DNA of 64,000 bases from Styela clava (lineage: Eukaryota). The stretch covers positions 8,866,001-8,930,000 of the forward strand of contig NC_135260.1 in assembly GCF_964204865.1 (NCBI RefSeq). The letters are read 5' to 3'. The translations under genes and the position numbers were made by a program. Below are positions 6,513 through 32,186 of this stretch, piece by piece. A model generated the notes under the pieces. It was not told the origin of the DNA. It searched no databases and saw only the letters and a list, made by a program, of their open reading frames with translations. Within the stretch, counting starts at the first letter, position 1, and every line of letters starts with the position of its first letter.

Positions 6513-8342
6513 ATGGACTTCTGTATATTATTGCTGCTGGTCTCCACCATTTACTCATCGATTCTCTCGTGCACATTTGCTAATACGGATTGCGGTTCTT
6601 GCCATTCCATTTGTAATGAAACTGATGAAGGAATAACGGTTGATCGTAGCATAAGGTATCAAAGATGTATAGGACCACCCGGACAGAATGGGTCTCTTGG
6701 TCTGAAAGGAGAACCTGGCACCCGTGGACCTCCTGGTCAACACTGCGTCTGCGAAGAATACAAAAATCTTTTGAGTCAAGTAGAGTTTCTGCGGGAAGAA
6801 TTAGAAGGTGTGTAGATGGTTAACCATACTATCATAATTACAGACACTGTACCACAGTGGTAAAATGGTTTCTTTACAATGGCCGCGGTGGAGGTTAGTT
6901 GGCTCCAGTGAATTTAATCACAATAATTTATATTTGCAAATTTTATTTATATATATTCAATTTTTGATTGTTGTTCAGTAGCATTTCAGTTAGCATACAC
7001 AACACAAGAGCACTCAAGGTATATAATACGGAATGACCAAATCAACACACCCAGCGTAAACTTTAAAATAGATATATCATTACGACGAATTATTAAAGAA
7101 GTTTATGATTCGATAGCAATAATTTTAAATTTCAGAAATTCAAGGAAATATTTTTAAATTAGTTTAACAAAATTACCTTATACACATTCTCCAGTTTTAA
7201 TTGTTTCAAGACTTTTATTGCATCGATTTTAAACTCAGTGGTTATGAGCTGACCAGCTACAATATTTCAGCAATTCAATGTTAATCTTTGATGATGAACT
7301 AAACATAGATATAAACATAAAAATTCTTAATTTAAACTCTGGCGCGAACACGACCAGAAAAGACCCGATCTGGCGTGAAATTATGAGCCGACAAGTAATG
7401 AAATGGTACATTATTTTGGATGTCTTATTCTGTAATACGCTTGTTTCACCCAAACACATAGTCGCATTTAGAACAGTTTTTTTACGACGACTCCTATCAT
7501 TTTATTCAGTGTTCAAAAAACATTCCAAGATGGAATTCTCGGAATGGAAAAAGGCAAAAAATGGGATGTGGTATCGTTTGTATGAAGACCGAGCAAATTG
7601 GGAACAAGCAAAATTAAATTGCGAAGCAGAAAACGCAAGATTGCCTTCGACCGGAATGAGAAATAGAACCATACGAAAGTAAGTGTTTTCTTTCCTTTTT
7701 ATTAGTGTTAATTTCAAGTTATTTTTGTTGAGGCAAAAGGATTTTTGATGGATGGTGATGATGGAATGAAGGAATTCTTTGTTTCAACGTTTGTTGTCTA
7801 TGGAATTTTTTCAAATGCGAATTTCCCATTAGTTCAGCGTTTACACTAAAATGAATGTATGTGACAACATGGGATCAACAGCACCGTTCGTGTTCTCGTG
7901 ATACCACTTCTCGTTCCTCACTAGTCTTGCGGTTGATGGTCGAGACAATCTTTGTTTGCAATTGAGTTGCAATTTGTTTAATATCAATGCTATTATAAGA
8001 TATACTGAATGTTATTATTAAAAACTTTCTCGGGTTGTTGCTAGTTAAACTTTTATTTCTATTTATTATTTAAGGGAAGTATTTCGTGGTTTACCGAGAA
8101 CAATAAAGTATCTGTGGTTGGGATTCAACGATATCCAGCAAGAGGGAAGATGGGTCTGGTCAGACAATGTCGAACTCTTCGATTTCTACTGGCGGGGAGG
8201 AGAACCAAATAATGCTTGGGGTGTCGAAGATTGCGCTCGCCTTAGAATTGAATCGCATGAAACAGGGAAAATAACAGTAAACGACCTCCCTTGCACTCAG
8301 ATGGCTATAACTTCTCGTTATATATGCGAATACGTGCCGTAG
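6513..8342 (+). CDS. Collectin-like C-type lectin C1, 3 exons, about 243 aa
   Basis: Exons 6513-6807, 7510-7678, 8075-8342. Signal peptide, Cys-rich segment, 8 Gly-X-Y triplets (GPPGQNGSLGLKGEPGTRGPPGQH), CVC neck, CTLD with WLG, EPN, EDC, VND, YICE. AATAAA at 8370. Confidence 0.9.
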
Positions 8343-8405
8343 TGTCACGGCGTAATGAAAACTAAATTCAATAAACTTATACTCATTCCACCAAAGTCTT
8401 TTACA

Positions 8406-8621
8406 GGCGCTCTCGATGGCGGACACCGAAACGTAGTACAGTATGTGTACCAGGTTAGGGTTAGGCCATAGTTTTATTCCAATTTTCCTCATTTTAGTTC
8501 TATTACGAGTTCGATGACTAGCCAAGTGACTCCCGTAGTATTTCCAGAAATTATGGCATAACCTGGTACACATACTACGTTCCGGTGTCCGCCATCTTGG
8601 TTTACATACTACGGGAGTACG
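8406..8621. mobile_element. Palindromic MITE (GG..CC-end family with GGTTAGGGTTAGG), copy 1
   Basis: Homologous to 25602-25837; 8-bp TSD CTTTTACA (8398-8405, 8622-8629). Confidence 0.85.
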
Positions 8622-10245
8622 CTTTTACAAGTAATTTCGTGATGAGAAACGGTCATTTTACTTTCTAAAATTCTTCAAAAACTGCTTTGTGAGGATAATT
8701 TCATAACATGTATTAGTAAATACAAAGTATCAACTAACAACTGGGTAATTATTTTATAAATGTTATAGTAACGAACAAATGAATATCTGCATCTCAATAT
8801 TTTTTGTGAGTGATAAATTTGAGTAAAATTTATTTTGTTGGTTCCATATTTCAGTCTCTTTTTGCAGTTATAACTATGCGGTTAGCAATACTTGAATCTC
8901 ATTTAACTATGAAAATTTAAATAAATTACCTTCGCACGGCAGTGAAAAATATTACATCATTTCACTATAATAAAACATGAATCGTTATTACGTTGGGGCA
9001 AACAGAAGTTTTTCAAGGCAATCGGAAGTAGTTGATAAGTAGTACAGTGGTGAAAGCCTAGGACAGGAATGACGAACCATTGACCAGCGGGTCACAAAAT
9101 GACCCAACGTGTGACAAACATGACGGCGCGTTAAAGAAGCAACAGCGCATTTCTCATTGATTTAATTTCTGTGACTCACGGTCCTCTATACTGTGATAAG
9201 AATAAATTATTTAACCTATTTAATTCAAGGGACAGCGAGCGGTACATACAGCGCAATAACTTCGACCAAATTGACTGTATAACGCTGATGAAATCCCAAT
9301 GTTTACACAAGATAAACCTGCAGAGTTGTTCCGCATGAGCGCAAGTTAGATACGACTGTTTTCACGGTGAAGATGATGGCAGTTTTACTACGGACTTAGC
9401 TCAGATATAAGGGAGCAAGGCAAGGTTTCAAATATTTTGAGTACAATGTACAATTATCGAGATATTATAAAAACTCTTACGTCTAACAGACGAAACGCTA
9501 CAATTTTCATCGCAAAAAGTAGGTTTTTATGCCTAACATATATTCTGCTGTAGTTACGATATTTAGATATTTGTTGGTTACAGAATAGGCCCTCACTGGG
9601 AATCTGAAATTAGGGGACGTCCGATGAGAATCGATACTCGTGTATATAGAATGCAGTGACGTTTATGATATATACTTCTACTCGACAACAACGTTTGCAC
9701 TTCATATCGCCATAAGATGACTAATAATGGATATTGAATTTGCTATATGTATGGCGTGCAGCTGATGCCTTACCATTTCAATATTAACTGCTTTAACGGG
9801 TTGATTTGGATTTATAATTGAATGATAACATCAGCCCGGCTATGTAACTAGGGCGCAATAATATAACATAAGAGCTGCACTCAATAAATGGACACGAAAA
9901 TCAAATGACGATCGAAATATTAGCTAAATTCCAGCCAAATCGTAAATTGTGTAAAAATATAATAATGGATAAATAAAAATAATGGGTTCCCAGAGACTAT
10001 TTCGTTGCGTATTGAAAATTTGAATAAGGTGGGTTCCATCAGTTGCGCAGAAAACGTCCATTTAGTGTAATATCTTTTATGATGTTTAAAGTACTGTAAA
10101 TAGGTTTCTCAATTTCCATTTACGACTTGGATAGCCCTTTATCATTGTAATATTATCAGGGTTTGCTATAATAACACGTATCAGACTGAGGAATCGATGG
10201 TCAGTTGAAAGTGTTAGGAACTGAAATTAAGAAATTTTTCAATAT

Positions 10246-10469
10246 GTATGTGAACCAAGATGACGGGCACCGGAACGTAGTGTGTGTGCCAAGTGATAGT
10301 TGGGCCATAATTCCAGGTACAAATACTACGGGAGTCAATTGGCTAGTCCCCGAACGCGTAATAGAACTGAAATAAGGAAAATTGGAAAAAAATTATGGCC
10401 TAACCCTAACCTGGTACACATACTACGTTCCGGTGTCCGCCATCTTAGTTCACATAATTCGGGAGTATC
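10246..10469. mobile_element. Palindromic MITE, copy 2 (left end truncated), about 50 bp upstream of the HAO start codon
   Basis: Same long inverted arms (AACCAAGATG.CGG.CACCGGAACGTAG / CTACGTTCCGGTGTCCGCCATCTT) as the other copies. Confidence 0.8.
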
Positions 10470-10520
10470 CTTATTCTTTTTAACTAATTACTTGACTGGA
10501 AAGGAAAAACTTCTTAAAAC

Positions 10521-13500
10521 ATGGAATCAAATCTAATATGCATAGAAGATTATGAAAGAATAGCAAAGAAGAGAATATCTCCTTATTACTGGGGATTCTA
10601 CTCTGGCGGAGCAGTGGGGGAACATACTATAAAAGAAAATTGTGACGCATATAAGAGGTAGGTCACCTTACTTATATATAAATTTTATTTGACTATACAA
10701 TTGCATTTTTTGAATTCACAATTTTGATAAGACGATGATACTACCTGGACCTGGTACCATCACAGCCATCTTTCATTGATTTTCAGGTGGAGATTTCGAC
10801 CGAAGCTTTTAAGAAACGTTTCAAAAGTGGACTGTTCCACCACAGTTTTGAATTTACGGATTCCCTTTCCGATTTGTGTTGGTCCGACAGCAAATCATGC
10901 TTTTGCATATCAAGAAGGCGAAGTGGCGACAGCAAAAGGTGATGATTAGAGAAGGCTTTTTTCCACAAATCGATTTCAATTTCTAAATACGTTTACTTCC
11001 ACTCAATTACAAATTTGTCTTGAGTATGATGTAACAGGCATTTCGTCTAAAAAATTTCTGTGTTATTGCGCTTGTTCGCCGATCTTTTCAGTGAACTCGA
11101 TTCGTACCCGTCACCCTGCATGGCGTACGTGTCCATATATTTGAACATCCGTTTTTTTATGATTCAATCGTATAGTAGTACTTCATACTTTCGTCCAAGT
11201 TCACAATGTTTGCTGCCGCGATAAATACAATTATTAGTTTGTCACAGAAGTTACATTTGATCGTTTAGCTGCAGCGTCCCTGGGCACTGGAATGACATTG
11301 AGTTTATTCAGCAACCGTAGTATGGAAGAAGTTGCAATGGAGGCTCCGGATGGAATCCGGTGGTGTCATATTCAAGTTATTCCGGTTTGATAAAATTAGT
11401 TGATTTTTAATGACGTGTTAGTTGTCTATAATGTAAAATATAGAAGAAACTATAGAAGCCGACCTTTGAACACTCTGAAATTGCAATCGCGTCATTTTAT
11501 ATGACGTCATAATCAACCATTTAGTCCCGCAAAAGGTACAATTTTGCTGCAAATTACGAAGACGACTTTGTTCAAAAGTAATGGCGACCGTTTTTTATTT
11601 CAAGCTTATAATTGATCTATTAACGTCATATGCCAGAGACCGTTCTCAGATCGAACAGTTCGCCGTATCAATATACCCATGTTTTGGAATCATAGCTAAG
11701 TTTGAAATATAATTCGTCTGTATTTGAGAACGTCGATATGCGGGAAAAAAAAATCCAAAAGTTTGACCTTTTTTTAGTATAACCTAGTTAAAACGGGCCA
11801 GTTGTGATTAGTTTATTTAATATTTACATTATAATCTAAACATATCAAGTGGTGATTTTTTCAGGATCGCGCAGTGATGGGCGATGTTATAACACGAGCG
11901 GAAGAGAACGGATTTCGGGGATTTATTGTAACAATTGACCAACCAGTATTTGGAAAACGATGCAACAAAACGGACGATGGAGAGACATATGATTTCATAT
12001 TTGACCTGGAGTAATCATTGTTACTTATCTCTCAACTCTTCTTTACACTACTTTTCACACTTTCCAATGCTTATATTGCATCATATTATCTATTTTTTGA
12101 AAAAACAGGCAAAAGAATATCTCCACATCAATCAAAAAGTGGAAACCCAACGCGCAGATGGAAGATATTGTAGCAACTTGTTACAGTTATTTGGATGGAA
12201 CGGAAACTTGGGAAAATATTGATTGGCTGAAACAAAGAACAAACCTCCCGATTGTTGTTAAAGGAATATTAACAGGTCACTTCCAAAAGAATGCCAAATA
12301 AATATTTATCGTGTATGAGTGAGATGAAGTATCCATTAGATTGGTCGTTATTGTATCGTATTTTAACCAAAGGCTTTTGTTGGCTTTTCGATATCATAAC
12401 TTATATTTGGTCAAAATCAATTCAACCTAAGCTTTTTGACGCTCAACAATTTTTATATTATAAATGAGAAAATTTGACACTGTTTGCACAAACACAATTT
12501 TGTTCAATTTTATCATATCTAGAGGAAATGGCTTTAGAAGCAATTGAACATAAAGTTGATGGCATATTGGTATCAAATCACGGTGGAAGACAACTTGATG
12601 GAACGTTTGCCACGGTTTGTTGAATATGATGTGAATTTAAACTGACATGTATATGAATTACTTTACATACGTATAACAAAATTAGAATGTCTGTAAGTTG
12701 TTAATTCAATTACTTTGCGGCAATAACAATTTACCACGAATCTTAGTTAAATAAATATTATACTACTGTTGTACAATAATATCAACCGAATACGAAACCA
12801 CCTTTTTGAAACATTACAGCAAAACCGGACTTCGATCAATCATTCTCATAAAATAGTCTATGACAGTGGTTCCCAAACTTTTTAGAGTTGGGACCCACTA
12901 TTTATTACCACAGCTTATGGCGACCCACTGAACTTTTTATGACATAACACAGAACACAGCAATGGCTAATCATCGCAAAACTACCGTGTTTTTTCGAAAA
13001 TAAGACTTGGCCTGAAAATAAGACCTAATTTGAATTTTCAAAAATGATTTTAATTAAACCTTACCCTAAAATAAATTTAAAATGTGTGGGAGAGGGAAGG
13101 TTCAATGACCTGAGATAAGGTGAAGATCACACCATTATTCAAGATTGTGTGATGTCACAATCACAATTATGATATTTGTCACTTGGTTTTTGTATAAGAA
13201 ATACAAATAAAAACAATGGATGTCGGTTTTTATATAATGTTCATTAAAAAATCTCGTGATTTTCTACAATGTAAGTTTATTATTGATAAATGATGAACGA
13301 TTCACCAGTGGGTCGCGACCCACATTCCGTTGAAAGTAAGCAGATCAACTTTATGTGACTATGTGACAACCAGGTGTGATTAATGAAAATGACTGTGCCG
13401 GCATAAATATGGGCCGGTTTGCAATTTTTCTATCCATATTATGGTATCTCATGCTCATATAATCCTCTTCTTTTTTCTCAAAGTTTAGATCGACTCTTTA

Positions 13501-14347
13501 CCAGAAGTAGTAAAAGCTGTGAATGGTAGATGTGATGTTTACTTTGACGGAGGAATTCGTAAAGGAACTGACATCGCGAAAGCACTTGCTCTTGTGGCTA
13601 AAGCCGTTTTCATCGGAAGGCCAATACTTTGGGGTCTTGCTTGCGATGTATGAATGTCTGTATATTTGATTTTAACGTGCAATATAGGTATAACTTCCAC
13701 ACGGTCAAATGCACTGGCAATCTGTACAATACTGCTCATGATTTTTGAGTAGAACTGCCCAGTATGAATGATTGTGCTGGGCGACATGCATGTCGTAGCT
13801 TCTATAAAGCAGTGCTACTCAAAATGGGATTGTTTTTCAACTATATTGCTGCTCGCGTACTACACGCATTTGACACGACATTTTAAAAGTTATTCTGAAA
13901 AGCATCTTGGCCATATCATTAGAAGTAAATGATTCAATCCAAAACCAAAACGATTCTGGTTCCATAACTTTAAGGAAAACGTTTTTGTTTATTGTCCTGT
14001 TAAAACGATTTGATTCTGATTTATTCATTTTCTTCATATAACAAACCTGATAGCAAATTACTATTTGTATAATATTTCACTAATTTGTTAATTTGCAAAG
14101 AAATATTCAACAGGGTGAAGCGGGAGTCAAAAAAGTTCTTGAAATTTTAAAGGATGAACTTGTTACAACCATGCAGCTGTTAGGTGAGATTTTAGAATCC
14201 TCGACAAAAAAATCTGTTGGCGTGATTATGTAGATTTTTCATATCTTATAATATGGTTTCAATTTTCCAGGTGTAACATCGATCAAGGAATTGCAATCAA
14301 CGCCTAATTTGGTTGTTCACGAGTCACGTGTTTTTGCAAAGTTATGA
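10521..14347 (+). CDS. HAO: Peroxisomal FMN-dependent 2-hydroxyacid oxidase (HAO1/HAO2 family), 9 exons, about 371 aa
   Basis: In-frame exons 10521-10657, 10787-10938, 11269-11384, 11865-12010, 12109-12275, 12523-12614, 13489-13647, 14114-14183, 14271-14347. Motifs [48 protein letters not shown]. Ends in the PTS1 signal AKL followed by stop. Confidence 0.92.
12864..13325. mobile_element. Degraded DNA-transposon remnants in an HAO intron (hAT-like end with a pogo/Tc-like fragment inside)
   Basis: Begins CAGTGGTTCCCAAAC, with GGGTCGCGACCCAC near 13310. TACCGTGTTTTTTCGAAAATAAGAC near 12982 resembles a pogo/Tc2 terminus. No TSD found. Confidence 0.4.
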
Positions 14348-14688
14348 AGAAAACAGAAGTTGTGCTATATTATATAGACTAGGGATTAGGTATAGTGTCA
14401 ATAGCTTGAATCATGAGCCTGTCTACTCGATTGATCGACCAAACTATTTTGCTCGTATTCATGGGGCACCTGATATCACGCGAAAATAGGTGAAAACACC
14501 AAAGCCTTGGTAGCTTTAGGTTGAATAACATGTTACGCCTTGATGCATCACTTTCAACTTATGTATATACAGTAGAGGTTGTTTGCATGTTAGCGTTGCA
14601 GTCACGGTTAGTATGTTAATGGGGTAAAATGATTTTTATTAAAAATTTGACTACAAATGAAAGTATACCATTTTAATATATTTTCTGA

Positions 14689-16963
14689 TTATATTTTTTC
14701 ACACAAATACTCTAATATGTCCACCGTACATCTACCGTCATTCAGGTACAGCCTGTTATCTTTTCTAAATAGCAGGGCGCAATCTTCAACTCCTTTGTGA
14801 TTATTTGGTTCTCCAGAAGACCACAAGGAATGATCAACAGTTGAGTCATCGACATCATCGGACCAAATAAATCTTCCTTCTTGTGTAACGTCATCCAGTC
14901 CAATCCAGCAATATGAAATTGAAGCCAATATTCCATTTTGTAGTTTCCTGAACAATCATGTCGTAAAATTATTGCCAGTATAGACAGACAAGATGCATCT
15001 CGTGAATAAATTCGACATTGACATTGCCGTTAATAATCAGACAGACAAGATGCATCTCGTGAATAAAATCGACATTGACATTGCCGTTATTGCATTTTTA
15101 CACCATTATCGAAAAGTTCTTCACCTGGCGGTCTCTTCGGTAATGATTTGAAAACGCTCAGGTCTAATTGAAACATCGTCTCTGAATGGGACTCAAAATA
15201 TAAATTGTAAATCGCTTCATAAACCTGTACTTTCATATAACTAAATGCAAAAGAAAATTTTTATAAGTATTTACTCACTGCCGGACAGTTGCGTCCCTTA
15301 TCCCCGCCGAAGCAAGTCTAGCATTGAATGATTGGCAGCTTTCTTTTGCATCTGGATAACTCATTGTTTCATCGAAAAGTCGATACCAGAAACCGTTGCT
15401 AGCTTTAGTCCAACCTTGTGCCTTCAAACTGAAGTCTTTCAAATCTGAGATATTTCAGGAGATTCCAATTATTGATTGTCACAATATACGCCTTTTTGTT
15501 GTATTGGGACAAGCAGAGTAGATAGTTTGAACTAATGATGATAAATATGTGTGGCATTAAATGACCTTGTATATGATACAAGTTTTAATGAATTATATAA
15601 AACTTGGAACATTGTTGGGAGTACTCATAGTCCGAGCACTAATGTAAAACTGCTATTCGAACGAAAAATGATGTGCTCGACAACTAGTTCAGCCTTAATT
15701 GTGCTTCTGCAATATATTATGCATTTTTGCTTTGTTACACGGGAATATATATATATTTTTCATGAAAGCAACATTTTTCGTTTTGATGTTAAAAATTCCT
15801 TCAACGTTAGGTCACAGATGCTCATTCGGAAAAAAATATAAAAGGCTGTCAAGATTAAGTACATCATTAAACGGAAAACTTAAAAAAATAAACAAACAAA
15901 AATCAATTTTAAAAGCCACATTTAAACTTCCAATGCTGGTTATTTTGCGTTGAAACAAAAACAACTATTTACAGTTTCATCATACAGGATCCGTTATTTC
16001 AAATTGTGTTGATTTTTTTAATTCACGCACACATCTTCATGTAACATTCAGCACAATCATTTTAAGAATTAGCATGAATTTTGCTGATTTTGCGTTGGAT
16101 GTATTTAGTCATCTGTCTTTCGTGTTTATATCTGCAGCAATGATCATTTGTGTGTTATCAAGTTTCACGATATCGAGCTGACGGGCTTAATGTATTTTAC
16201 TAAAGTAATATTATTCGGAAACGGAGTGTTCATTCGGATCCTTTTGCTAAATTCTTTGTTATCGTTTTTATGAAAAAAATAGATACTAACATTTTTATTA
16301 CTAAAAGTTGGTTGAAGTTATTGGGAAGGTATTAGCTTTTCCCTCTTGCTTCCCAATAATTATTTAAAACAAGGGGATGCTTCAATTAAAGTGAGCACCT
16401 TTTTATTTGGTCACACTTGTCCTTATCCTCCTCGGTGGCAGCAAAGTCGAGTTGGATTACTTTTGAGGCCCCACCGTGGTAAGGCACCAATGCATGGTAT
16501 ATATTCTTATTGGTCTCTTGTTTATATAACAGAAATAATACATTTCATCATACTCTAGTTTTCTTTAATAGCGTTACATTCTTAGTATTGATTTACCAGT
16601 TTTATGTTTTTAAGATTAGACTCATCTTATATATTCTGTTTGATTCCTCTTACCAGATAATTCTGTTTGCAGCGAGTCTATTTTTCTTGACACAATATCA
16701 AATTCAGAGCAGTGACAAGGAAGACCTGATTCTCCTGTAGGCCCTGGTAAACCAGGAAGTCCACGATCTCCCTTTTGGCCAATTCTACCGGCTTTTCCTG
16801 GAGGGCCGACAGCCCTTGTAGGGAATTCAAGATTTTGATTTGCTCCGTCCTCGTTTTGATCGCACGAAAGACGACAAGATCCAAGCTCTATACTTGCGAA
16901 CCCCGGAGAAAAACATAATGAACCACAAACTAAGGAGAAAGCAAGTGTAGCTCTTACAGCCAT
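14689..16963 (-). CDS. Collectin-like C-type lectin C2, 3 exons, about 244 aa
   Basis: Exons 16963-16654, 15444-15279, 14947-14689. Signal peptide, CRLSC, 10 Gly-X-Y triplets with GPPGKAG, PCHC neck, CTLD with WIGL, EPN, EDC, LND, YLCE. Confidence 0.92.
14983..15089. repeat. Local tandem duplication of about 50 bp in C2 intron 2
   Basis: GACAGACAAGATGCATCTCGTGAATAAA.TCGACATTGACATTGCCGTTA occurs twice here but once in C3 and C4. Confidence 0.85.
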
Positions 16964-17004
16964 TTGGTTTTAGATTACTTTTATAATATAATGTTTGCCA
17001 TAAA

Positions 17005-18788: not shown

Positions 18789-18930
18789 CAAAGTATGAGC
18801 TCGTTCCAATTACACTAAAAACGTTCTGCTGCCCTATTTGATTCATGTATTTCTGAAAGAGAACAGCTGTAACAAGACAAATTGCGAGAAATGAACAATT
18901 TAATTTTATTGTTATGATATAAACATTGTT

Positions 18931-19328: not shown

Positions 19329-22277
19329 CAGTGGCGGCGCGTGGTCATTTTGACAACCGGGGCAAGCTACTGCCGGACCAAGTCACCCCCATCTACGGGG
19401 ACAGGATGAGCGCTGTAAGTTCTCCCATCATTTTATGAGTATAAAACCCATTCCATCGGTAACAACCAATCGGCAAAAGCGACAATTTTTAACGATAGGA
19501 AAGTGTCTTTAAAACCGGTCCAAGTCAAGGGATTAATAAATATAGACATAGTTTATTTTGAAACCTCTTTCAAAAGGAAAGGCAATATTTACCCAGATAA
19601 ATACAATGACATATTAACAGAAGCTTCGGGAAAGCAGACAAAACCTAAAATAAGGTTTAAAACGTTACTATGAAGAAAGGAAAAGTAATGCAAAGGTAAG
19701 GACATGCGTCGCTCACTCATAGATATATATGCTGCTAGACTTCTACTGCTTGAACATATATGCAAACGCGCCGCGGTTTCTTGGAAGCAAAATGCTCAAT
19801 AACGCGCTGATAAAAGTCATGCATCCCAGAAATAACGTCTCTGTGAATGGATAAAACAGCTAAGGAATTTAATCTATCTTGCTTCATTGTGTTTCTGAGA
19901 TACGTTTTAATACGCTTCAGCGTGCTGAATGTTCGCTCTGCGTCGGCGGAAGAAATAGGCGTCGTCAAAATGATGTCCAGAAATTTTGCAGACGCCGCAA
20001 AGGTAGTTACTAGAGTGTTATCTATGAGGAACCCATAGAGCGCGCAAGTTGATGTGATGTTCAAAAAAGTTTGATTGGTGTATATACATCGCAATTCATT
20101 TTCCAATTTACCCACTTTATCATGGGGTAAAATTTGGAGACAGTAGCCAACAAATGGATGGGAAATTGACGTGCAAATTTTGAAATTTTTGGGGTTCATC
20201 AAAGAGAACGCGGCAAGGTGTTCAGTGCGCAGACGCAGGCGTAAAGAAGCACTCCATGTGTCGTCGTATTTTATTGTTTCCCGGATACGAGATACAGCAT
20301 CGCAGAAGTCTGAAATACACGACTGCACAGACGCTCCATCCATTAGCCTTGACTGCAATGCGCCGTATAATACATCCACGTGATAGAATATCGTGGAGAA
20401 AAAAGCGAGAAAAAATAAAAAATCACCATCTTCTAGCAGACGCTGTAGACCTGCCGCCTCCCTCACAGACCGTTCGTCCCAAACCGGAGAGCTCTGAATG
20501 CCATTGAAACACTCAATGAGCTCAGACCTAATTTCGGACACGCCCTGCACCACGCGTGATTGGAAGTTCCAACGTGTTGGTGCACAAGCTGGGAGACGGC
20601 GGCTACATATCTGTCGAAAGAGGTCAGAGCGCTTCGGCGAAACGGAAAAAATGAAGAAAACCCCGAAACATTTGCAAAAAATATACGGACGAGAGGGGTA
20701 TCAAGACACATATTTTTAATAACGAGGTTAAATTGGTGTGCATAACAATGTAAAAAATGCGCATGAGAAAAATCTTCTTTTATATAAACTTGAACACCAT
20801 GTTTCGACCCACTCATGACTGCCGCGCCGTCATAAGTTTGAGCTATCAATTTTAGCTTCGCGTTGTAAGGCTGTATCACTTCTTTCAGTACAGCCGATAT
20901 CCCGCAAGCCGTGCGATCAACGATTGGTACAAAGCTGTGAAATCTCTCGGTAGGTTTACCATCTTTCACAAACCGAAAAATCACAGCCAGTTGGGAAACG
21001 CACGTGATGTCAGTTGTCTCGTCAGACTGAATCGAAAGGAACTGGCAATTCTCAATTTCCAGAGCCAAATGTTGGAAATAAATTTTATACATTGAGTCGA
21101 GCAAATCATTTTGGATATCCTTAGATGTTCCTTCCGAAACAGTTGCGGCATCAAGATGATCTCTCAATACTGTATCTAGGGATGCGGTGTATTCCACCAT
21201 ATCCGAAAATACCCCTCTATTAGAAGAGCCAGCCCGTTCATCGTGCCCACGGAGGGACAACTCGTGACAACCAATGAACTTTAAAACATCTATCAATCGA
21301 CCGAGAACATGGCGGTTTTTCTCGACGTTTTGGTTGTGCGGACGAATACAAACCGCGCCATCTTCATCCAACTGTGCTGCAATATTAACATTTCCGAATG
21401 TTCGGTATTTTACTGCACTGTCCAGATGCTCCATAGGAGATTGATGATCCCTGGCACGCTCGGAAAGATGTTTAAGATCTCTAAAACCAAATTTACACCA
21501 ACGTGAGTCACGGGCGGTAGCAAAAAGTAGGCAATAAAAACAAAAAAGTGCATTTTTGTCCTCGCTGTAACACAACCATTTGTGTTTTTTATACCAAGTT
21601 TCTGCGCAGAATGTACGCCGACGCTTTCCTCCGTCATGAGATTGTTCCAGTGAACAATTTTTTGGTCGATAAGGCCCAAGTCGTTGTACTTCTAAATTTT
21701 GTTCCAGCGGCAGCTGCGAAAACAGAGTGCGAAGGAGTGCATCAACCTTATTCATTATGAGGTCTAAGGCTAAGAAATGCGAAGCCGGAAAGAAGTGAGC
21801 AGCTCAAAAGGAATGTGAAAAATCGAAAGCAAATGGACTAAAGGTCTCTAACAGATTCAAATAGCGAAACAAGCGACAAAAACGAAGGCGAGGAAACTAT
21901 CAACTCTTCAAGCAACCAACGAACGAGATGGAATGCGTGAATATGTCAACACGTTGTTGTAAGAAACGTCGGCATTGTGTCGTCATAATTTCGGGGCTAG
22001 CCCCGATCGGCCCCGATGATTTAGTAAAAGAAACAGAAAACAAACGAGACAAACGCGGCGAGTGGAACATAAAAGAGAGAATACGATATACAATGAGCAA
22101 TCGGGGCAAGATCGGCGTCGCCCCGTCGACGTTCGGCGAAGGCTTTGCGAGCGAAAAATGAACCATGTCGGGAGAATATGGCTAGTGTAGACAGTCTGTG
22201 CAACCGATATTGAGGTATTTTTCGAATATTTTTTATTATACCGAAAAAACAACCGGGGCAATGGTCCTATTAACGCG
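19329..22277 (-). mobile_element. hAT DNA transposon (Tip100/ZMYM1-like transposase), decayed, one terminus deleted
   Basis: Left end CAGTGGCGGCGCGTG after CTCTTGTC. The right end stops at AACGCG and joins spacer lacking about 20 bp. ACAACCGGGGCAA occurs near both ends. Absent from the paralogous spacers. Confidence 0.9.
19735..21755 (-). pseudogene. Frameshifted hAT transposase
   Basis: TTF-type Zn finger (WLCYSEDKNALFCFYC), LRGHDE, DETTD, YDGA, HCYAH, TRW (in a shifted frame) and dimerization motif PISSADAERTFSTLKRIKTYLRNTM. Frameshift at the T-run near 20646 and a locally shifted segment near 20120-20180. Confidence 0.9.
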
Positions 22278-22836
22278 TTATACCAATATACTGACTAATT
22301 TGCTTCATTGTCGTTCGGTTAATGTTTAACTATACTTCCTCGTTGGTATTGGTAACTCGTCACCACAAAACTCGAATATTTGTCTTTCAAGTCGGGCGCA
22401 AAGGTAGATGACCTTTCTATCTACCAGATTCACAAAACAAGCTTCATTTGACCTCTGCGTCAAGGATGAGCAAAATGTTGTACGGCGGTAAATAAGGGAC
22501 ATTCAATTTTAAAAAATCAATCATTTAATTATGATATCATATAAATTTTATGTACCACCGGTATGTTAGTCGTTGGTACCACTAATGGTTTATTTATCGG
22601 TAATTGGGCTATTTCTGGGTCCATGAAGTTCTATGAATTCAACTTACTATCCAATCTAGTTGGGGGATCATCGTATCTTAGTTGTAGCTGAAATTTAGTA
22701 TTTGACTCAATTCAAATTATTGATTAGACGCCATAATCGCATTTTTAGACAACCTTAAAAGGTCAATATGACGTCATAATGTAATCGATATACCCTCATT
22801 GTAAAAGAGGGGCCTCGCAATTGGCATAACGTAGGG

Positions 22837-23575: not shown

Positions 23576-23741
23576 GCTTAGGCTAGGGTCCTCATTGTCA
23601 AAATCAAGCCCTGATTTAAGAGAAATGTTTGTGTTTAATGCTATGTTAAAAAGAATTGAGTTTCTGTGTATGATATTATGGTGAAATGATTTGTTCTAAA
23701 AATTTGATTTTGAATGAAACTAATTTTTCCATATTTTCTGC

Positions 23742-26182
23742 TCATATTTTTTCACACAAATACTTTGTGGCATATTGACATGCTCCATCATTTAGGTACA
23801 ATCTGTTATTGTGTCTGAATATCATAGCGCAATCTTCAACTCCTCCCGAATTATTTGGTTCTCCAGTAGACCACAAGGAATGATCAACAGTTGAGTCATC
23901 GACATCATCCGACCAAATAAATCTTCCTTCTTGTGTGACGTCATCCAGTCCGATCCAGCAGTTTGAAATTGAACTCAATATTCCATTTTGTAGTTTCCTG
24001 AACAATCATGTCGTGAAATTATTGCCAGTATGCAGTATTATCAGACGGACAAGATGCATCTCGTGAATAAAATCGACATTGACATTGCCGTTATTGCATT
24101 TTTACACTATTATCGAAAAGTTCTCTGCCTGGCGGTCTCTTCGGTAATGGTTTGAAAACGCTCAGGTCTAATTGAAACATCGTCTCTGAATGGGACTCAA
24201 AATATAAATTCTAAATCGCTTTATAAACTTGTACTTTCATATAACTAAATGCAAAAGAAGTATTTACTCACTGCCGGACAGTTGCGTCCCTTATCCCCGC
24301 CGAAGCAAGTCTAGCATTGAATGATTGGCAGCTTTCTTTTGCATCTGGATAACTCATTGTTTCATCGAAAAGTCGATACCAGAAACCGTTGCTAGCTTTA
24401 GTCCAACCTTGTGCCTTCAAACTGAAGTCTTTCAAATCTGAGATATTTCAGGAGATTCCAATTATTGATTGTCACAATATACGCCTTTTTGTTGTATTGG
24501 GACAAGCAGAGTAGATAGTTTGAACTAATGATGATAAATATGTGTGGCATTAAATGACCTTGTATATGATACAAGTTTTAATGAATTATATAAAACTTGG
24601 AACATTGTTGGGAGTACTCATAGTCCGAGCACTAATGTAAAACTGCTATTCGAACGAAAAATGATGTGCTCGACAACTAGTTCAGCCTTAATTTTGCTTC
24701 TGCAATATATTATGCATTTTTGCTTCGTTACACGGGAATATATATATGTTTTTCATAAAAGCAACAATTTCGTTTTTATGTTAGAATTTCTATCAACGTC
24801 AGGTCACAGATGCTCATTCGGAAAAAAATTATGAAAGGCTGTCAAGATCAAGTACAATATAAAGCGGAAAACAAAAAACAGTTTTAAAAGCCACAATTAC
24901 ACTTCCAATGCTGGGTATTTTGCGTTGAAAAAAATAATACCTATATACAGTTTCATCATACAGGGCCCGTTATTTCAAATTGTGTTGATTTTCTTAATTC
25001 ACGGACACATCTTCATGTAACATTCAGCACAATTATTTTAAGAATTAGCCTGAGTTTTGCTGACTTTGCGTTGGATGTATTTAGTCATCTGTCTTTCGTG
25101 TTTATATCTGCAGCAATGCTCATTTATGTGTTATCAAGTTTCACAATATAGAGCTGATGGGCTTAATGTTGTTCACTAAAGTATTATTATTCGGAAACGA
25201 AGTGTTCATTCGGATCCTTTTGCTAAATTCTTTGTTATCGTTTTTATGAAAAAAATAGATACTAACATTTATATTACTAAAAGATGGTTGAAGTTATTGG
25301 GAAGGTATTAGCTTTTCCCTCTTGCTTCCCAATAATTATTTAAAACAAGGGGATGCTTCAATTAAAGTGATCACCTTTTTATTTCGTCACACTTGTCCTT
25401 ATCCTCCTCGGTGACAGCAAAGTCGAGTTGGATTACTTTTGATGCCCCACCGTGGTAAGGCACCAATGCATGGTATATTTTCCTATTGGTCTTTTTTTCA
25501 TATAACAGAAATAATACATTTCACCATACTCTAGATTCTTTAATAGCGTTACATTCTTAGTATTGATTTACCAGTTTTAGGTTTTTAAGATTAGACTCAT
25601 CGGTGCTCCCGAAGTATGCGAACCAAGATGGCGGACATCGGAACGTAACATGGGTAACAGGTTAGGGTTAGGCCATAATTTGTTTCCAATTTTCTTTATT
25701 TTAGTCCTATTATCAGTTTGAAGACTAGCCAAGTGCTTCCCGTAGTATTTATACCTAAAATTATGGCCTAACCCTAACATAGTACACATATTACATTCCG
25801 ATGTCCGCCATCTTGGTTCGCATACTTCGGGAGCCCCGACTCATCGTATATATTCTGTTTGATTCCTCTTACCAGATAATTCTGTCTGCAGCAATTCCAT
25901 TTTTCTCGACACATTATCGAATTCAGAGCAGTGACAAGGAAGACCTGGTTCTCCTGTAGGCCCTGGTAAACCAGGAAGTCCACGATCTCCCTTTTGACCG
26001 ATTTTACCGGCCTTTCCCGGAGGGCCAACTGCCCTTGTAGGAAATCCAAGATTTTCATTTGCTCCGTCCTCGTTTTGATCGCACGAAAGACGACAAGATC
26101 TAAGCTCTATACTTGCGAACCCCGGAGAAATACATATTGAACCACAAACTATGGCGAAAGCAAGTGTAGCTCTTGCAGCCAT
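23742..26182 (-). CDS. Collectin-like C-type lectin C3, 3 exons, about 243 aa
   Basis: Exons 26182-25873, 24437-24272, 23997-23742. Same architecture as C2, with EPN and LND. Confidence 0.92.
25602..25837. mobile_element. Palindromic MITE, copy 3 (complete), in C3 intron 1
   Basis: GGTGCTCCCGAAGTATGCGAACCAAGATGGCGGACATCGGAA...TTCCGATGTCCGCCATCTTGGTTCGCATACTTCGGGAGCCCC, perfect 8-bp TSD GACTCATC. The empty site is in C2 near 16619. Confidence 0.95.
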
Positions 26183-27908
26183 TTGGTTTTAGATTACTTT
26201 TATAATATAATGTTTGCCATAAAACTCTAACATGAATACATGCGTAATTTGATTAATATTCAGCAACATGTCGCAAGAGATATAATGCAGAAAGAGTTAT
26301 AATTCTGATAATGCCCAGAATCAATCAACAGACAAAATTTTCTGTAATTTTCAATATTCTGTACTGTCTTCACTTCAGTATGCAAACCGGGATAGTCGAG
26401 TCAAATACTGTCGCCTTTTGTCTGAGTAGTTTTATGAAACGCCTCAGAGTTGGGAGTCGGAATCACAATTTCAACGAAGACACACCTGTGATTCAGCTTA
26501 GTAAATAAAAATGAAACGCACGATAAGCGCGTGTCTCTTGTCTGCTTTTGTATAATATAACTTATTACAATATATATTGACTGATTTGCTTCATTGTCGT
26601 TCGGTTAATGTTTAACTATACTTCCTCGTTGGTATTGGTAACTCTTCACCACGAAACTCGAATATTTGTCTGAAGTCTAGCGCAAAGGTAAATGACCTTT
26701 CCATCTTCCAGATTCACAAAACAAGCTTCGTTTGACCACTGCGTCAAGGATAAGCAAAATGGTGTACAGAGGTAAATGATGGGCTCTAAGCCTTAAGGGC
26801 CCCGACATTTAGCTTTGAAATATCAATCATTCAATTATGATATCATATAAATTTTATGTATCACTAATGGTTCATTTGTCGGTAGTTGGGCCATTTCTGG
26901 TGTCATGAAGTTTTATTACAACTTGAGTTTGTTAAAGGTTTATTGAATTCAACTTACTATACAATCTGGTACTATACTTGGGTGATCAGCCTATCTTACT
27001 TGTAGTTAAAATTTCGCATTTGACGCAATTCACAATTTCATTTACGACACCATATCACATTTTACACATCCTTAAAAAGTCAAATATGACGTCATAATGT
27101 AATCGATATAACGTCATTGTAAAAGAGGGGAATCACAAATGGCATAGCATAGGACAGGGATGGCGAACCTCTTAATGATTGCGTCAGCTTATATATTTTC
27201 ATTATGGAAAAGAAGACAGTGGGTCATAGATATATGAGATATTTGACTATAATGAGAAACTCGCTGTCGCTTCGTTTCCTCAAGTCTTATATCCCCTGGT
27301 TGATGTTGTGTAGTTTTTCAGTTTTACACATGCAGCACCTATATCAGGACAGCGTTAATTTGGGTCTATAAAATTTGGTTTTCCATACGGCATTGCAAGC
27401 GGGAAAGGAATAAACTACAAAGTATGAGCTCGTTCCAATTACACTAAAAACGTTCTGCTGCCCTATTTGATTCATGTATCTCCGAAAGAGAACCGCTGTA
27501 ACAAGACAAATTGCGAGAAATGAACAGATCAATTTTATTGTTATGCCATAAACATTGTTACAACATTGTTGTCAGGAGATGCATACAGATATAGTTCACT
27601 TATTGTTAGATTGAATCAAGGCGTGTTTTATTATTGATTTTATTGCTTACATGTTACCATGTTCCTTGCATCAATTCGTAACTCGGCGGGTCTAAGGAAA
27701 AACATGAGCATGTGACCCGCGGGACAGGGACTCGCCACCCTAGGCCTAGACTAGGACTCATTGTCGAAATCCAGCCCTGATTTGAGAGAAATGTTTGTGT
27801 TTAATGCTATGTTAAAACGGTCTTCAGTTTCGGTATATGATATTATGATGAAATGATTTGTTTTAAAAATTTGATTTTAAATAATATTAATTTCTCCATA
27901 TTTTCTGC

Positions 27909-29470
27909 TTATATTTTTTCACACAAATACTTTGTGGTATATGGACAGTTTCCATCATTTAGGTACAATCTGTTATTTTGTCTAAATACCACAGCGCAAT
28001 CTTCACCTCCATTCGCATTATTTGGTTCTCCAGATAACCATAAGGAATGATCGACAGTTAAGTCATCGACATTATCCGACCAAATAAATCGTCCTTCTTG
28101 TGTGACGTCATCCAGTCCGATCCAGCAGTTTGAAATTGAAGCCAATATTCCATTTTGTAGTTCCCTGAACAATCATGTCGTAAAATTATTGCCAGTATAT
28201 GCAGTATAATCTGACAGACAAGACGCATCTCGTGAATAAAATCGACATTGACATTGCCGTTATTGCATTTTTACAACATAATCGAAAAGTTCTCTATCCT
28301 CTATCGGGCGGCCTTTTCGATAATGATTTAAAAACACTCAGGTCTAATTGAAACTCAAGTCTGTGTGGAACTCAAAACAGGTTCTACATTGTTTTATGAA
28401 TCCGTACTTCCATATCCCCAAATGAAGAAGACAATTTTATTAAATATTCACTCACTGCCGGACAGTTGCGTCCCTTATCCCCGCCGAAGCAAGTCTAGCA
28501 TTGTGTGATAAGCAGCTTTCTTTTGCATCTGGATAACTCTTTGCTTCGTCGAAAAGTCGATACCAGAAACCGTTGCTAGCTTTAGTCCAATGTGTCACCA
28601 AGTTCTTGAAGACTTTCAAATACAAAGTTATGTAGATGTAATTGATTAAGTAACTGACGCCAACAAGAATATTATTATTGGAAGTCGAACGATGATCGAT
28701 GAAGTTGTATCATCATTCTCAGTAAAGTTTTGTATATAATTTTTTAAACTATTCATAGCTTTCCCATAAACACCAGAAGTTTATGATACGGGGCAGATTT
28801 GTTTTTGTTGCTAAAGAAGAGGAAAGCAAATTCAATAATACGTCATAGTAATAAGACAACGAAAAACTATAAAAAATTCAGTGTGTAACAGTTTTGAAAG
28901 TGGGAATTTTGCTGTTAGTGACATCTTCCTGGAATTGGTTATAAATTATAACTTATAATTACTGTATGTAACAAAATTACTTAAACTATTCTATCATATA
29001 TATATATATATATATATTATGTACATCAGCGTTCCCCAGGAATGAATTGTTGATTTCTGGGAAGAAATACTGAAATATTATTTTATATTTAGGGAAGATG
29101 CATATTTTCAAAATGTGCAAATGGAGGAATTTATCAAAAAGGTTTTATATCACACTGTACCAGATAATTTTGTTTCCAGCGATTCTATTTTCCTTGACAC
29201 AACATCAAATTCAGAGCAACGGCAAGGAAGTCCCGGTTCTCCTGTAGGCCCTGGTAAACCAGGAAGTCCACGATCTCCCTTTTGGCCGATTTTCCCGGCT
29301 TTTCCCGGAGGGCCGACAGCCCTTCTAGGAAATCCAAGATTTTCATTTGCTCCGTCCTCGTTTTGATCACACGAAAGACGACAAGATCCAAGATCTATAC
29401 TTGCGAAACCCGAATAGATACCTATTGAACCACAAACAATGAATAAAGCAAGTGCAGCTCTTACAGCCAT
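27909..29470 (-). CDS. Collectin-like C-type lectin C4, 3 exons, about 240 aa
   Basis: Exons 29470-29161, 28612-28456 (shifted AAG acceptor), 28164-27909. CRLSC, 10 Gly-X-Y triplets, PCRC neck, EPN, LND. Confidence 0.85.
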
Positions 29471-31081
29471 TTGGTTTCAGATTACCTTTATTATATATTG
29501 TATGACATAAAACTCTAAAATGAATGCATGTGTAATTCGATTATTATTCAGCAACATGGCTCAGAAGATATAGCGTATACTGTAGAGAATGTAATGATTC
29601 TAATACTGGCTCCTGAACCTTCTTTAAATTTAAAATATGAGACCATCGAAAAACATTTAAGATTACTATATATAGGCTGGTGAAGCCATACAAATTTACG
29701 ATCTATATAATTAGTTTTATAAAACGTATTGGAGTTGGGGTACCGGGGTACCCACTATATATGTATATTGATATATATTTTTTCTCTCCTGAAGTAATAC
29801 AGAACCACTTGGTTTAGTATGGTGAGCTTGCCACGACCATGGACTTTTTTACGCTATAAACGTTCAAAATTTCTTCCTCGAATCCTCACTTCCCGAAGTC
29901 AATGTTTTTAATATTTCTAATGCTTTAAAGTTCACTCTGACAGTTACTCCCATGGCATATTCACTTTTCTACAACGAGTTATCTATACTGTAACGATATT
30001 TTAGAAAAATTATTGAAACGATTTGACTGATTAAAATTCATCTTGAGTACAAATAATATCAACATTATTGCAGGAATCAGCGATATTAGATTTGCAAACT
30101 CGAAGTCTAGACTTGCAGCAGTGCAGCTGCCTTATATCTTTCAACTGAGGAGCAAAGTTCATTTCAAAATTATGCTCAAAATATTTACTTTCCTTTTATT
30201 CCTGTAAAGTCCGTAAAATATAATAATTTTACACAGTTTTTTTGACAATAATATTCCATATTTGTATGAGAAAATTCACTAACAGTATAAATGAGACAAA
30301 AACAAATACATTTTCATTGCAATTTTGATGAATATTACCAATAAAAAACTTATGACTAAATAATGTTTTGAAATCTCTCGAAAATTTAGTTGATTTGCTG
30401 CATTGTTTTACTGCATATTTAATCTTCAATTCAAAATTGCTTACTCGGGCATAATATATTTATCTTTGTCACAAGTTGGTTCATGAACCCGAATATATCA
30501 TTACACAATGATTTTCATCTTATTGTGTGCCTATTCGACAGACCTTTATTTGAACAAACTCTAAAACACCTATGCCGTACGATATTCGAAACGGGAGGTT
30601 TCATCTGATATTCACAGAGTTAAAATGACTCGTAAATTTCGATATAGCAATCAATATTATTTGTATCCCACGTCACAATCAGTGGTTCTTTGTATGTTGT
30701 GATAATCTGTAAACCAACACTTGTTTTTGTTTCAAAAGTTATATATCAGATTTAGATAACGCGTGTCATGTAGATGTAGCTCAAATAGTGGCATACATCC
30801 ATATTTTGAAAATGGGGGAACCTGCTGGTAGTGAGTTCGACACGAAGAAGAAACCGTTTTTAAAATTTCGAAACCCATCGCTGCCTGCAATTTATGATTT
30901 AATATTATAGTTTCCAATACTGAAAAATTCTACAGCAGTAATACAATGCATTGGTTACATTGGACACAATGATACAATACACGTTCTGAAATCTATCTAT
31001 TTTATACAACATTTGCTACACAATGTGATATATTTAACTTGGGGAAAAAATTCATCTTGGAATGATTTTAATATAACATGG

Positions 31082-32186
31082 TTATTGTTCCCGCTCGCAT
31101 ATGTAAGGTGCATTTGCGTAGCCTATGCCACAAGGAACGTCGTTCAAGGATACTTCCCCTGTTACGTGGCGAACGATATTCATCAGAGCACAATGTTCGT
31201 TACCCCGAGCGTTGTTTGGTTCCCCACTGCGCCACAGAGTGTGGCGACGGTATCTGACGTCACGAATTCCATCTGACCAAATCCACCTTCTTCCTCTGTT
31301 CAAGTCGTCAAGTCCAACCCACAAGTAGGACACTGTGTCGGCTATACTACTCAGTAACTCCCTGAAAAGATAAAAATTAAAATCAATTAGGAGACATATT
31401 TTAACGGAAAACGTCAAATATTTTACCCATGTGTTATTTATTAGAACGTGTTATTTTATATTAAATCATGGCACAGACAGTTTTGGGGCAAATTCGATTG
31501 ATGCGAAAAGTCCGATCAAGCACGTGTTACGCCGTTAATTTGAAGTAGAAAAAATGCGTCAAGAAAGAAAGATTAACACATATGGCGTGTTTTAAAATGA
31601 GAATTTCAATAAATAAATAGTACTTTCGTGTAGTCAGTTTTCTTATTCCCGCTGATGCAATTCTTGCGTTCTCTGCTGCGCAGTTTTTCTTGGCTTGTAA
31701 ATATGTTACATGCTCTTCAAAAAATCGATAAGCCAACCCATTGCTAGCATTACTCCAAGTCAAGAGTTTGAATTTTGCATGCTTTTTTAAATCTGGAATT
31801 GAGAGGATTAAAAAAAAGATTTTTATTAAGAAATGTGCTGATTAGTCAGACATTTTGCTTAAATGAAATAATTTTGAAGTTCAAGTCTTAAAGTTTGGGA
31901 GCACAATGAATAAATTCGAAAATGTATTCGTCTTACCTGCCAATTCATTTCGAAGATATTCCAAATCTTTCCTCAAATCTTTAAAAGCAGGGTCTGAACA
32001 CCCGCACGGTGATCCTGGAGGTCCTGCCTTTCCCGGAGGCCCTTGTGGACCAGGCAGCCCTGCTTCTCCTGTCTGAGGTACGCCAAGCTTCTCCAAACAA
32101 ATATGACATTGAGCATTGCCCAAAACTGTACCAATAAGCCCATAAAACAAACAAACAATCCCGCACAATGTAAAGCTGAACGTCAT
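31082..32186 (-). CDS. Collectin-like C-type lectin C5 (divergent), 3 exons, about 232 aa
   Basis: Exons 32186-31937, 31792-31624, 31361-31082. Signal peptide, CHIC, 7 Gly-X-Y triplets with GPPGKAGPP, PCGC neck, WVGL, EPN, EHC, LND, YICE. Confidence 0.9.

Follow-up and report, generated by a model that had tools for sequence, protein, structure and literature searches.

A tandem array of collectin-like lectin genes in Styela clava and a stalk exon type also found in ficolin-like genes

We analyzed a 64,000-nucleotide stretch of a chromosome-scale contig of the ascidian Styela clava (G000:C14:8866001-8930000, hereafter the window), which takes in five of six tandemly arrayed genes for collectin-like lectins. 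Gene models were built from open reading frames (ORFs) and splice-site reading, and the spliced models were searched exon by exon against the 377 Mb assembly, while database entries served as whole-protein queries. Five intact genes, G1 to G5, each with three coding exons, are located within the window (Table 1). A sixth gene, of G1 type and on the plus strand, was found 0.7 kb upstream at L001:5526-7320 (G000:C14:8863526-8865320), so the array reaches past the window start. The database proteins P0151, P0070 and P0066 match the G2, G4 and G5 models exactly, and P0074 (243 aa) differs from the model of the upstream gene at 2 residues; all are S. clava entries. RefSeq already annotates the array genes under the automatic names 'C-type lectin mannose-binding isoform-like', 'lectoxin-Enh5-like' and 'collectin-11-like'. 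In 5/5 window genes a phase-1 intron lies at the junction of the neck and the carbohydrate-recognition domain (CRD), and a second intron, of phase 2, divides the CRD. A preliminary description, made from the letters of this DNA, had listed five genes with signal peptide, Cys pair, 7-10 Gly-X-Y triplets, a Cys-x-Cys (CxC) motif, neck and C-type lectin-like domain (CTLD), with a phase-1 intron before the CRD; all of these are present where it had placed them, and the peptide strings that it quoted from the window occur in G3 and G2.

The predicted proteins have every part of a collectin, that is a Cys segment, Gly-X-Y repeats, a helical neck and a CRD with ligand residues. An N-terminal Cys-containing segment follows a hydrophobic N-terminus in all five genes, with the signal peptide called by eye, and leads into 8 (G1), 10 (G2, G3 and G4 each) or 7 (G5) uninterrupted Gly-X-Y triplets. 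The collagen/neck junction carries CxC in 5/5 genes, as CVC in G1, CHC in G2 and G3, CRC in G4 and CGC in G5. The Pfam domain Lectin_C was detected on exon 3 of each of the three genes scanned (G1, G2 and G5; E values in Table 1). When the window genes are aligned, EPN, the Glu after it and Asn-Asp do not vary, which accounts for all five Ca2+/sugar ligand positions, and the tryptophan of the WND motif is replaced by Leu in G2-G5 and by Val in G1. By the EPN/QPD rule, EPN in a CRD denotes mannose-type specificity. Among exon 3 of G2-G4 (14692-14946, 23745-23996 and 27912-28163), paralogue differences were observed, by alignment only, to be concentrated directly behind EPNN and behind the third Cys, which are the sugar-site loops.

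An AlphaFold model of G2 contained the CTLD core and a helical neck at residues 86-110, where the local predicted distance difference score (pLDDT) was about 60. A Foldseek search with this model returned Endo180 CTLD2, the CL-K1 trimer in second place, CEL-I and the langerin trimer at the top, and it aligned neck and CRD of G2 with the CL-K1, langerin and MBP trimers; TC14, a tunicate lectin considered below, was not among the top 50 matches listed. Judged from the model, this outcome is the generic CTLD fold with a neck, and it does not discriminate between families.

Expression was assessed with RNA contigs from 4 same-organism runs (3 studies), which were mapped onto the G4/G5 region. The runs contain 5-35% of the sampled words of 27900-32200, a share that fits exons only. 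In G4, the joint 28163/4>28456 was seen in runs X1 and X2 and the joint 28612>29161 in run X1, and in G5 the joints 31360/1>31624 and 31792>31937 were both seen in runs X1 and X3. All 4 are CT..AC-ended, corresponding to GT..AG on the minus strand, and they are exactly the 4 modelled introns of G4 and G5, recovered in runs from two studies. In exon 2 of G4 the AG acceptor of G2/G3 is lost and the splice lies 9 bases further into the exon, dropping 3 linker residues (window 28600-28640); this shifted-acceptor form is the one present in the RNA contigs. The G5 contigs continue to about 30182, and the extension is probably the 3′ untranslated region.

Table 1. Genes and coding exons of the lectin array within the window (window positions)
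Feature	Position	Strand	Content or evidence
G1 gene	6513-8342	+	ORFs and splice sites
G1 exon 1	6513..6807	+	Signal peptide, Cys-rich segment, 8 Gly-X-Y triplets, CVC, neck; phase-1 end; without Lys motif
G1 exon 2	7510..7678	+	CRD first part; phase 1 in, phase 2 out
G1 exon 3	8075..8342	+	CRD second part (EPN, VND), stop codon; Lectin_C E 6.3e-7
G2 gene	14689-16963	-	ORFs and splice sites
G2 exon 1	16654..16963	-	Signal peptide, SIELGSCRLSCD segment, PGKAG motif, 10 triplets, CHC, neck; phase-1 end
G2 exon 2	15279..15444	-	CRD first part, includes the TC14-resembling stretch
G2 exon 3	14689..14947	-	CRD second part (EPN, LND), stop codon; Lectin_C E 2.4e-9
G3 gene	23742-26182	-	ORFs and splice sites
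G3 exon 1	25873..26182	-	Stalk as in G2; 10 triplets, CHC
G3 exon 2	24272..24437	-	Protein sequence identical to G2 exon 2
G3 exon 3	23742..23997	-	CRD second part, stop codon
G4 gene	27909-29470	-	ORFs and splice sites, RNA contigs
G4 exon 1	29161..29470	-	Stalk, 10 triplets, CRC; lower end backed by RNA joint 28612>29161
G4 exon 2	28456..28612	-	Shifted acceptor; RNA joints
G4 exon 3	27909..28164	-	CRD second part, stop codon; RNA joint
G5 gene	31082-32186	-	ORFs and splice sites, RNA contigs
G5 exon 1	31937..32186	-	Signal peptide, Cys pair, 7 triplets, strict PGKAGP, CGC, neck; RNA joint 31792>31937
G5 exon 2	31624..31792	-	CRD first part; RNA joints
G5 exon 3	31082..31361	-	CRD second part (EPN, LND), stop codon; Lectin_C E 1.5e-8

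Genome-wide, exon 3 of G2 had 141 matches and exon 1 of G2 had 39. We scanned 38 stretches, comprising 37 fetched loci and the window, with a separate profile for each exon, and identified at least 23 complete collectin-like genes with the exon order 1-2-3: 6 in the C14 array described here, 12 on C16, 2 on C1 and one each at C14:6.85 Mb, on C3 and on C9, plus one partial gene. The collectin-like architecture with its own stalk exon is not special to this array, as it was found on five contigs and in homologues of Clavelina, where two proteins of Clavelina lepadiformis combine collagen with Lectin_C at 33-34% identity. On C16, the 12 complete genes and the partial one form a dense array of alternating orientation (C16:6430000-6514000; L013, L025-L032) with 11-17 triplets and PGKKGP; their exon 1 ORFs have no start Met, so that a signal peptide may sit in a further upstream exon. 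Another array, at C8:14.74-14.78 Mb, has CRDs close to those of G2-G4, preceded by a five-triplet mini-collagen with GKAGP (L008:1084-1251), and the database model P0140 from this array appears to fuse two adjacent genes. A missed collagen exon near the closest non-array CRDs (L002-L007) was considered and rejected, with no run of at least 5 triplets in the 8 kb fetched for each.

A further 12 exons of the exon-1 type were found to belong to ficolin-like genes. A same-strand fibrinogen C-terminal exon follows in 10 of the 12; one of the remaining two is followed by N-terminal fibrinogen exons only, and the other by none in the 6.5 kb fetched. Pfam Fibrinogen_C was detected on the ficolin-like heads with E values of 2.1e-25 and 2e-7. 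These genes, which occur in arrays on C13, C10, C6 and C14, resemble the array genes in having a first exon with signal peptide, SLGxCxLSC segment, PGKxGP, 7-9 triplets, CxC or CC, a coiled coil and a phase-1 end, whereas their head is a multi-exon fibrinogen-like domain in place of the two-exon C-type lectin domain. PGKxGP, PGKxG and CxC or CC were counted in 17, 21 and 22 of 24 collectin-like stalks, and in 9, 10 and 11 of the 12 ficolin-like stalks, respectively. A phase-1 donor ended the stalk exon in 4/6 ficolin-like and 5/6 collectin-like exons checked. Five other stalk-type exons (L034, L035, L036, L037; C2, C19, C5) have PGKxG motifs, PGKLGP in three of them, and their head domain was not found, with neither a C-type lectin nor a fibrinogen exon detected within 6.5 kb.

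The ficolin-like stalks were also the best genome matches of the G2 stalk beyond G2-G4, with identities of 43% (C13), 47% (C6) and 52-55% (C10). They outranked the neighbouring G1 (35% identity), and G5 was not found at all in this search. That the likeness is mere collagen low complexity was rejected, because the non-collagen N-termini alone align, 14/28 residues being identical between G2 and a C10 ficolin-like gene (E 1e-8). Taken on sequence, the stalk exon of the array is homologous to that of the S. clava ficolin-like genes. The preliminary description had instead pointed to vertebrate CL-K1 as the model of the stalk. This specificity did not hold, given that CxC or CC, the Cys pair and PGKxG(P) are common to the ficolin-like genes that give the best stalk matches. 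The CxC resemblance to COLEC10/11 is real as a feature, occurring in CL-L1 as Cys119 and Cys121 at the neck start (PMC4339841); it is not specific, because 11/12 ficolin-like stalks of the same genome have CxC or CC.

The CRD had in turn been described as TC14-type. TC14 of Polyandrocarpa misakiensis (PDB 1byf / 1tlg) is a galactose-binding lectin and, like the array proteins, a styelid C-type lectin, but its chain of 125 residues in the PDB table has no stalk, whereas all array genes have a stalk exon. We scored TC14 (1byf) against our queries among all solved-structure sequences. With whole G2 it reached 47.3 bits in one stretch and rank 6/105, the best single-domain match, preceded only by receptors with several domains and by a fragment of SP-D whose alignment includes collagen and neck as well; DC-SIGNR (46.8), CD23 (43.5), CEL-I (43.0), COLEC11 (39.6, rank 15/105) and MBP (38.0) came after it. 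With exon 2 of G2 it was the best single stretch (18.6 bits, rank 4/22, about 15/32 identical), in an alignment where TC14 residues 7-38 agree with the TC14 string given in the preliminary description, and with the C8-array protein P0140 it scored 49.9 bits. Exon 3 of G2 placed it at rank 53/112 with 26.4 bits, as compared to 39-45 for Endo180, CD23, CEL-I and DC-SIGNR and 30.8 for COLEC11. For G5, TC14 (28.5 bits) and COLEC11 (28.3 bits) ranked 35/56 and 36/56, and for the G1-type protein TC14 was absent from the best 60 of 61 matches, where COLEC11 ranked 11/61 with 38.0 bits. The exon-2 family profile ranked TC14 18/55, and TC14 was absent from the best 60 of 105 matches of the exon-3 family profile, in which COLEC11 scored 50.6 bits. 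The resemblance to TC14 is thus real but confined to G2-G4, mostly to exon 2, because TC14 ranks low or is absent for G5, the G1-type protein and the exon-3 profile. For G2, G5 and the G1-type protein, the solved structures that matched best were non-collectins, namely Endo180, mannose receptor, langerin, Mincle and DC-SIGNR.

What did extend across the tunicate sequences was a motif of seven residues at the end of CRD exon 2, which was defined after inspection of the sequences and is present in 30/30 S. clava exons, 2/2 Clavelina proteins and 0/7 vertebrate collectins. The TC14 stretch aligned to G2 exon 2 fits this motif. It occurs 6 times in 221,271 residues of the best 150 database representatives, S. 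clava proteins included. These 150 come from an exon-3 profile search of all representatives, which gave 10,332 matches at E 0.001 or better; they are mostly unnamed multi-CTLD proteins, ranked by summed score, and their S. clava rows are the four family members P0066, P0070, P0074 and P0078 and the C8-array protein P0140. A word search with exon 3 of G2 gave no candidate sharing three words, which carries little weight, as eligibility was limited to proteins of 47-149 residues. Searches by words with whole proteins and with an alignment (11 and 19 matches) returned S. clava, Clavelina, SP-D and MBP sequences, and no COLEC10/11, TC14 or Ciona protein.

Trees were built separately for exon 3 and for the stalk. 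The exon-3 tree has 31 rows and 84 columns, with 7 near-duplicates of the C16 array left out. In this tree the 4 vertebrate MBP/SP-D CRDs form a clade at 99/95, and 24/24 tunicate CRDs lie opposite the vertebrate CRDs across a branch at 89/96. G2-G4 form one lineage at 98/94, and G5, L017 and the pair of G1 and the upstream gene form another at 93/84, near two Clavelina proteins; the array holds two CRD lineages, G2-G4 on the one hand and G1, the upstream gene and G5 on the other. Six S. clava CRDs that have no collagen exon in the 3-4 kb fetched upstream intersperse with collagen-bearing CRDs. In the approximately unbiased (AU) test, p was 0.046 for the six array CRDs as one clade and 0.017 for all S. 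clava collagen-bearing CRDs as a clade, and forcing every collagen-bearing CRD, from S. clava, Clavelina and vertebrates, into one clade cost 21.9 log-likelihood units (p-AU 0.026). The stalk tree, with 31 rows (10 left out) and 106 columns, has an unresolved backbone with 10/28 branches starred; two collectin-like stalks group with the ficolin stalks of C13 (85/81), and each label needs 3 changes. AU values for the stalks were 0.073 for a collectin-like clade, 0.035 for a ficolin-like clade and 0.36 for the six array stalks together. All AU results are borderline, for groups defined with the trees already in view. Membership of the CRDs in a tunicate-specific C-type lectin clade is supported in a broad sense, through the 24/24 tunicate CRDs standing apart and the exon-2 motif. 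To that extent the likening to TC14 can be kept; as a special relative of the whole family, TC14 cannot, given its rank for G5 and its place outside the best 60 for the G1-type protein.

Ascidians are described as possessing MBL-like collectins, ficolins and MASPs in PMC5465252 and PMC11312191, and our genes are further members of a lectin kind already known in ascidians. The collectins and MBL-like lectins described for Ciona, Styela plicata and Botryllus (PMC5465252, PMC514892, PMC11312191) are likewise secreted proteins in which a Cys segment at the N-terminus is followed by a collagen-like stretch, a neck and a C-type CRD, from families expanded in a tunicate genome; set against these descriptions, the S. 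clava family is distinguished by its size (at least 23 genes), by the 7-10 collagen triplets in the window and by CxC at the collagen/neck junction. Nine collectin genes with unclear orthology to MBP are reported in Ciona (PMC514892), and a urochordate MBL on its own branch with a function called unclear (PMC11312191). Exon shuffling has been proposed for the evolution of CL-10/11 collectins (PMC12077231). COLEC10/11 are like the array genes in the Cys of the N-terminal segment, Cys-x-Cys at the neck start, a helical neck and an EPN-type CRD, and unlike them in gene structure, since COLEC10 spreads 72 collagen residues over exons 1-4, with a separate exon for the neck and a single one for the CRD, whereas the array genes have the stalk in one exon and the CRD in two (PMC4339841). 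COLEC11 was never the best solved-structure match of an array protein. MBL/MBP share the EPN CRD, an N-terminal Cys-rich segment and Pro-Gly-Lys-X-Gly-Pro within the collagen, a motif that is strict in G5 and also occurs in Amia MBP, but CxC after the collagen was found in 0/7 vertebrate MBP/SP-D proteins examined, which have 19-59 triplets and whose CRDs form the separate clade noted above. The open-access literature gave no description of this S. clava array or of a stalk common to ascidian ficolins and collectins; most primary ascidian lectin papers are in subscription journals, and supplementary gene-family tables may bear on the counts.

Other features of the window are as follows. The window opens with the final exon of a gene resembling acid sphingomyelinase (163-633, minus strand; Pfam ASMase_C, E 5.2e-16). 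Exons of an FMN-dependent dehydrogenase, hydroxyacid-oxidase-like, are located between G1 and G2 (10300-14233, plus strand), of which one exon was scanned and gave Pfam FMN_dh at E 1.9e-4, below the cut-off. A hAT-type transposase remnant, consisting of two neighbouring ORFs with DUF4371 (E 1.6e-17) and the hAT C-terminal dimerisation region (E 4.1e-10), is located between G2 and G3 (19735-21755, minus strand), and nowhere in the window is the GC content higher (0.435). Pseudo-ORFs of the type ...GLGHNFRYKYYGSHLAS..., almost identical to one another, recur in introns and intergenic sequence at 8160-8573 (-), 10300-10536 (+), 25577-25789 (-) and 61537-61833 (+), as well as in L011 and L014; this dispersed repeat with GLGHNFRYKYYGSHLAS-type pseudo-ORFs is probably a short interspersed element.

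We consider it likely that the locus is an array of collectin-like genes for oligomeric, Ca-dependent, mannose-type pattern-recognition lectins, some of them with MASP binding, within a family of at least 23 genes whose stalk type is common to about 12 ficolin-like genes. The stalk exon is a complete module, composed of signal peptide, Cys pair, a helix of 7-10 triplets, CxC and a coiled-coil neck of about 25 residues, with Pro-Gly-Lys-X-Gly opening the collagen helix in G2-G5. Three chains would zip up starting at the neck, and the two Cys clusters could pin the short triple helix together and join trimers into larger bouquets. Exons 2 and 3 together make one short-form C-type CRD, and the clustered CRDs may bind mannose-, N-acetylglucosamine- or fucose-type sugars on microbes in a Ca2+-dependent manner. 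G2-G5, with Lys in the X position after Pro-Gly, may dock MASP and trigger C3. The Lys motif is missing from G1 and the upstream gene, which may act as agglutinins or opsonins only.

Several points weigh against this interpretation. For the array genes we infer function, oligomer state and MASP binding alike. The collagen part is very short, and the exon 1 scores for Pfam Collagen (25.9, 21.5 and 17.3 bits) do not reach the curated cut-off of 27.2. The strict PGKxGP occurs in G5 only, G2-G4 having Pro-Gly-Lys-Ala-Gly followed by R or K. The G2 model is weak, with a mean pLDDT of 62.6 from an alignment of 7 sequences. The trees are based on single exons (84 and 106 columns), are poorly resolved and contain no TC14, COLEC10/11, Ciona, Botryllus or Halocynthia sequence. 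Expression was checked for G4 and G5 only, in runs labelled 'RNA?' by guess, whose RNA nature rests on the spliced joints.

How the array genes came to have this architecture can be explained in more than one way. They may be much-diverged orthologues of the vertebrate MBL or COLEC10/11 lineage, with collagen, neck and CRD assembled once before the tunicate/vertebrate split and the exon differences produced by the intron turnover for which tunicates are known, a scenario that we regard as unlikely. Domain order and EPN-type CRD are the same in both, the neck/CRD boundary is marked by an intron in both lineages, PGKxGP also occurs in Amia MBP and CxC in CL-L1 (PMC4339841), the CL-K1 trimer came second in Foldseek, and SP-D and MBP were the only named non-tunicate full-length matches of the word searches. 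The trees, having neither TC14, COLEC10/11 and Ciona sequences nor other vertebrate CTLD groups, cannot separate orthology from independent assembly, because a tree of tunicate CRDs and vertebrate collectins only cannot tell the two apart. Orthology is harder to reconcile with best solved-structure matches that are not collectins for G2, G5 and the G1-type protein, and with a CRD of two exons in the array genes but one in COLEC10/11. The six S. clava CRDs without a detected collagen exon in 3-4 kb upstream fall among collagen-bearing CRDs, and a single clade of all collagen-bearing CRDs is disfavoured by the AU test, with the caveat that the group was named post hoc on 84 columns. The preliminary description had proposed that a lineage-specific CRD of TC14 type was shuffled onto a CL-K1-like stalk, or that TC14 lost its stalk, in an assembly independent of MBL-type collectins. 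This too seems improbable to us: the lead of TC14 over DC-SIGNR, CD23 and CEL-I for whole G2 is small, it drops away for G5, the G1-type protein, G2 exon 3 and the exon-3 profile, and no COLEC10/11 protein came from two whole-protein word searches. Moreover, CxC and the Cys pair in 11/12 ficolin-like stalks of the own genome give no pointer to CL-K1, and 7-10 triplets in one exon contrast with the 72 residues over four exons of COLEC10 (PMC4339841). It does draw on TC14 as the best single-stretch structure match of whole G2 and of its exon 2, on the fit of TC14 to the tunicate exon-2-end motif, on its score with P0140, and on the Cys-x-Cys that CL-L1 has at its neck start as the array genes do (PMC4339841).

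Stalk-exon shuffling within tunicates would attribute the pattern to one phase-1 stalk exon that moved, or was converted, between fibrinogen-like and C-type lectin heads, resulting in a repeatedly swapped MASP-binding stalk. We judge this possible but somewhat unlikely. It would account for the G2 stalk being closer to ficolin-like stalks than to that of G1, with G5 not found, for the phase-1 end of both stalk-exon kinds, and for the grouping of C13 ficolin stalks with two collectin-like stalks, where each label changes 3 times; ficolin stalks held as one clade had p-AU 0.035. The same tree does not reject a clade of collectin-like stalks (p-AU 0.073) or the six array stalks together (p 0.36), with 10/28 branches starred on its backbone. 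Collagen repeats bias both the stalk alignment and the tree, the five stalk exons without an identified head may be mislabelled, and unequal divergence rates could yield the observed match ranking without any exchange. A wider form of the proposal, which we find rather unlikely and put forward tentatively, is that in styelid ascidians one self-contained phase-1 stalk exon, with signal peptide, Cys pair, MASP-type lysine motif, mini-collagen, CxC knot and coiled coil, serves C-type lectin as well as fibrinogen-like heads and has been exchanged between them. Tunicate collectins and ficolins would then form a single stalk family whose heads were swapped and which arose independently of vertebrate collectins, and TC14 would belong to the same tunicate CRD clade as a member that has no stalk.

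Collagen-stalked lectins initiate complement's lectin pathway, and the orthology of the tunicate ones to MBL or COLEC10/11 has been left open in print. The locus and its genome-wide relatives make up a compact, testable system, in which very short stalks occur with or without the MASP-type lysine and the same stalk type is found on lectin and fibrinogen heads. If the sharing of stalks does not reflect exchange, the array is a further case of an expanded lectin family in a filter feeder; if it does, it would show how exon shuffling builds the recognition molecules of the lectin pathway.

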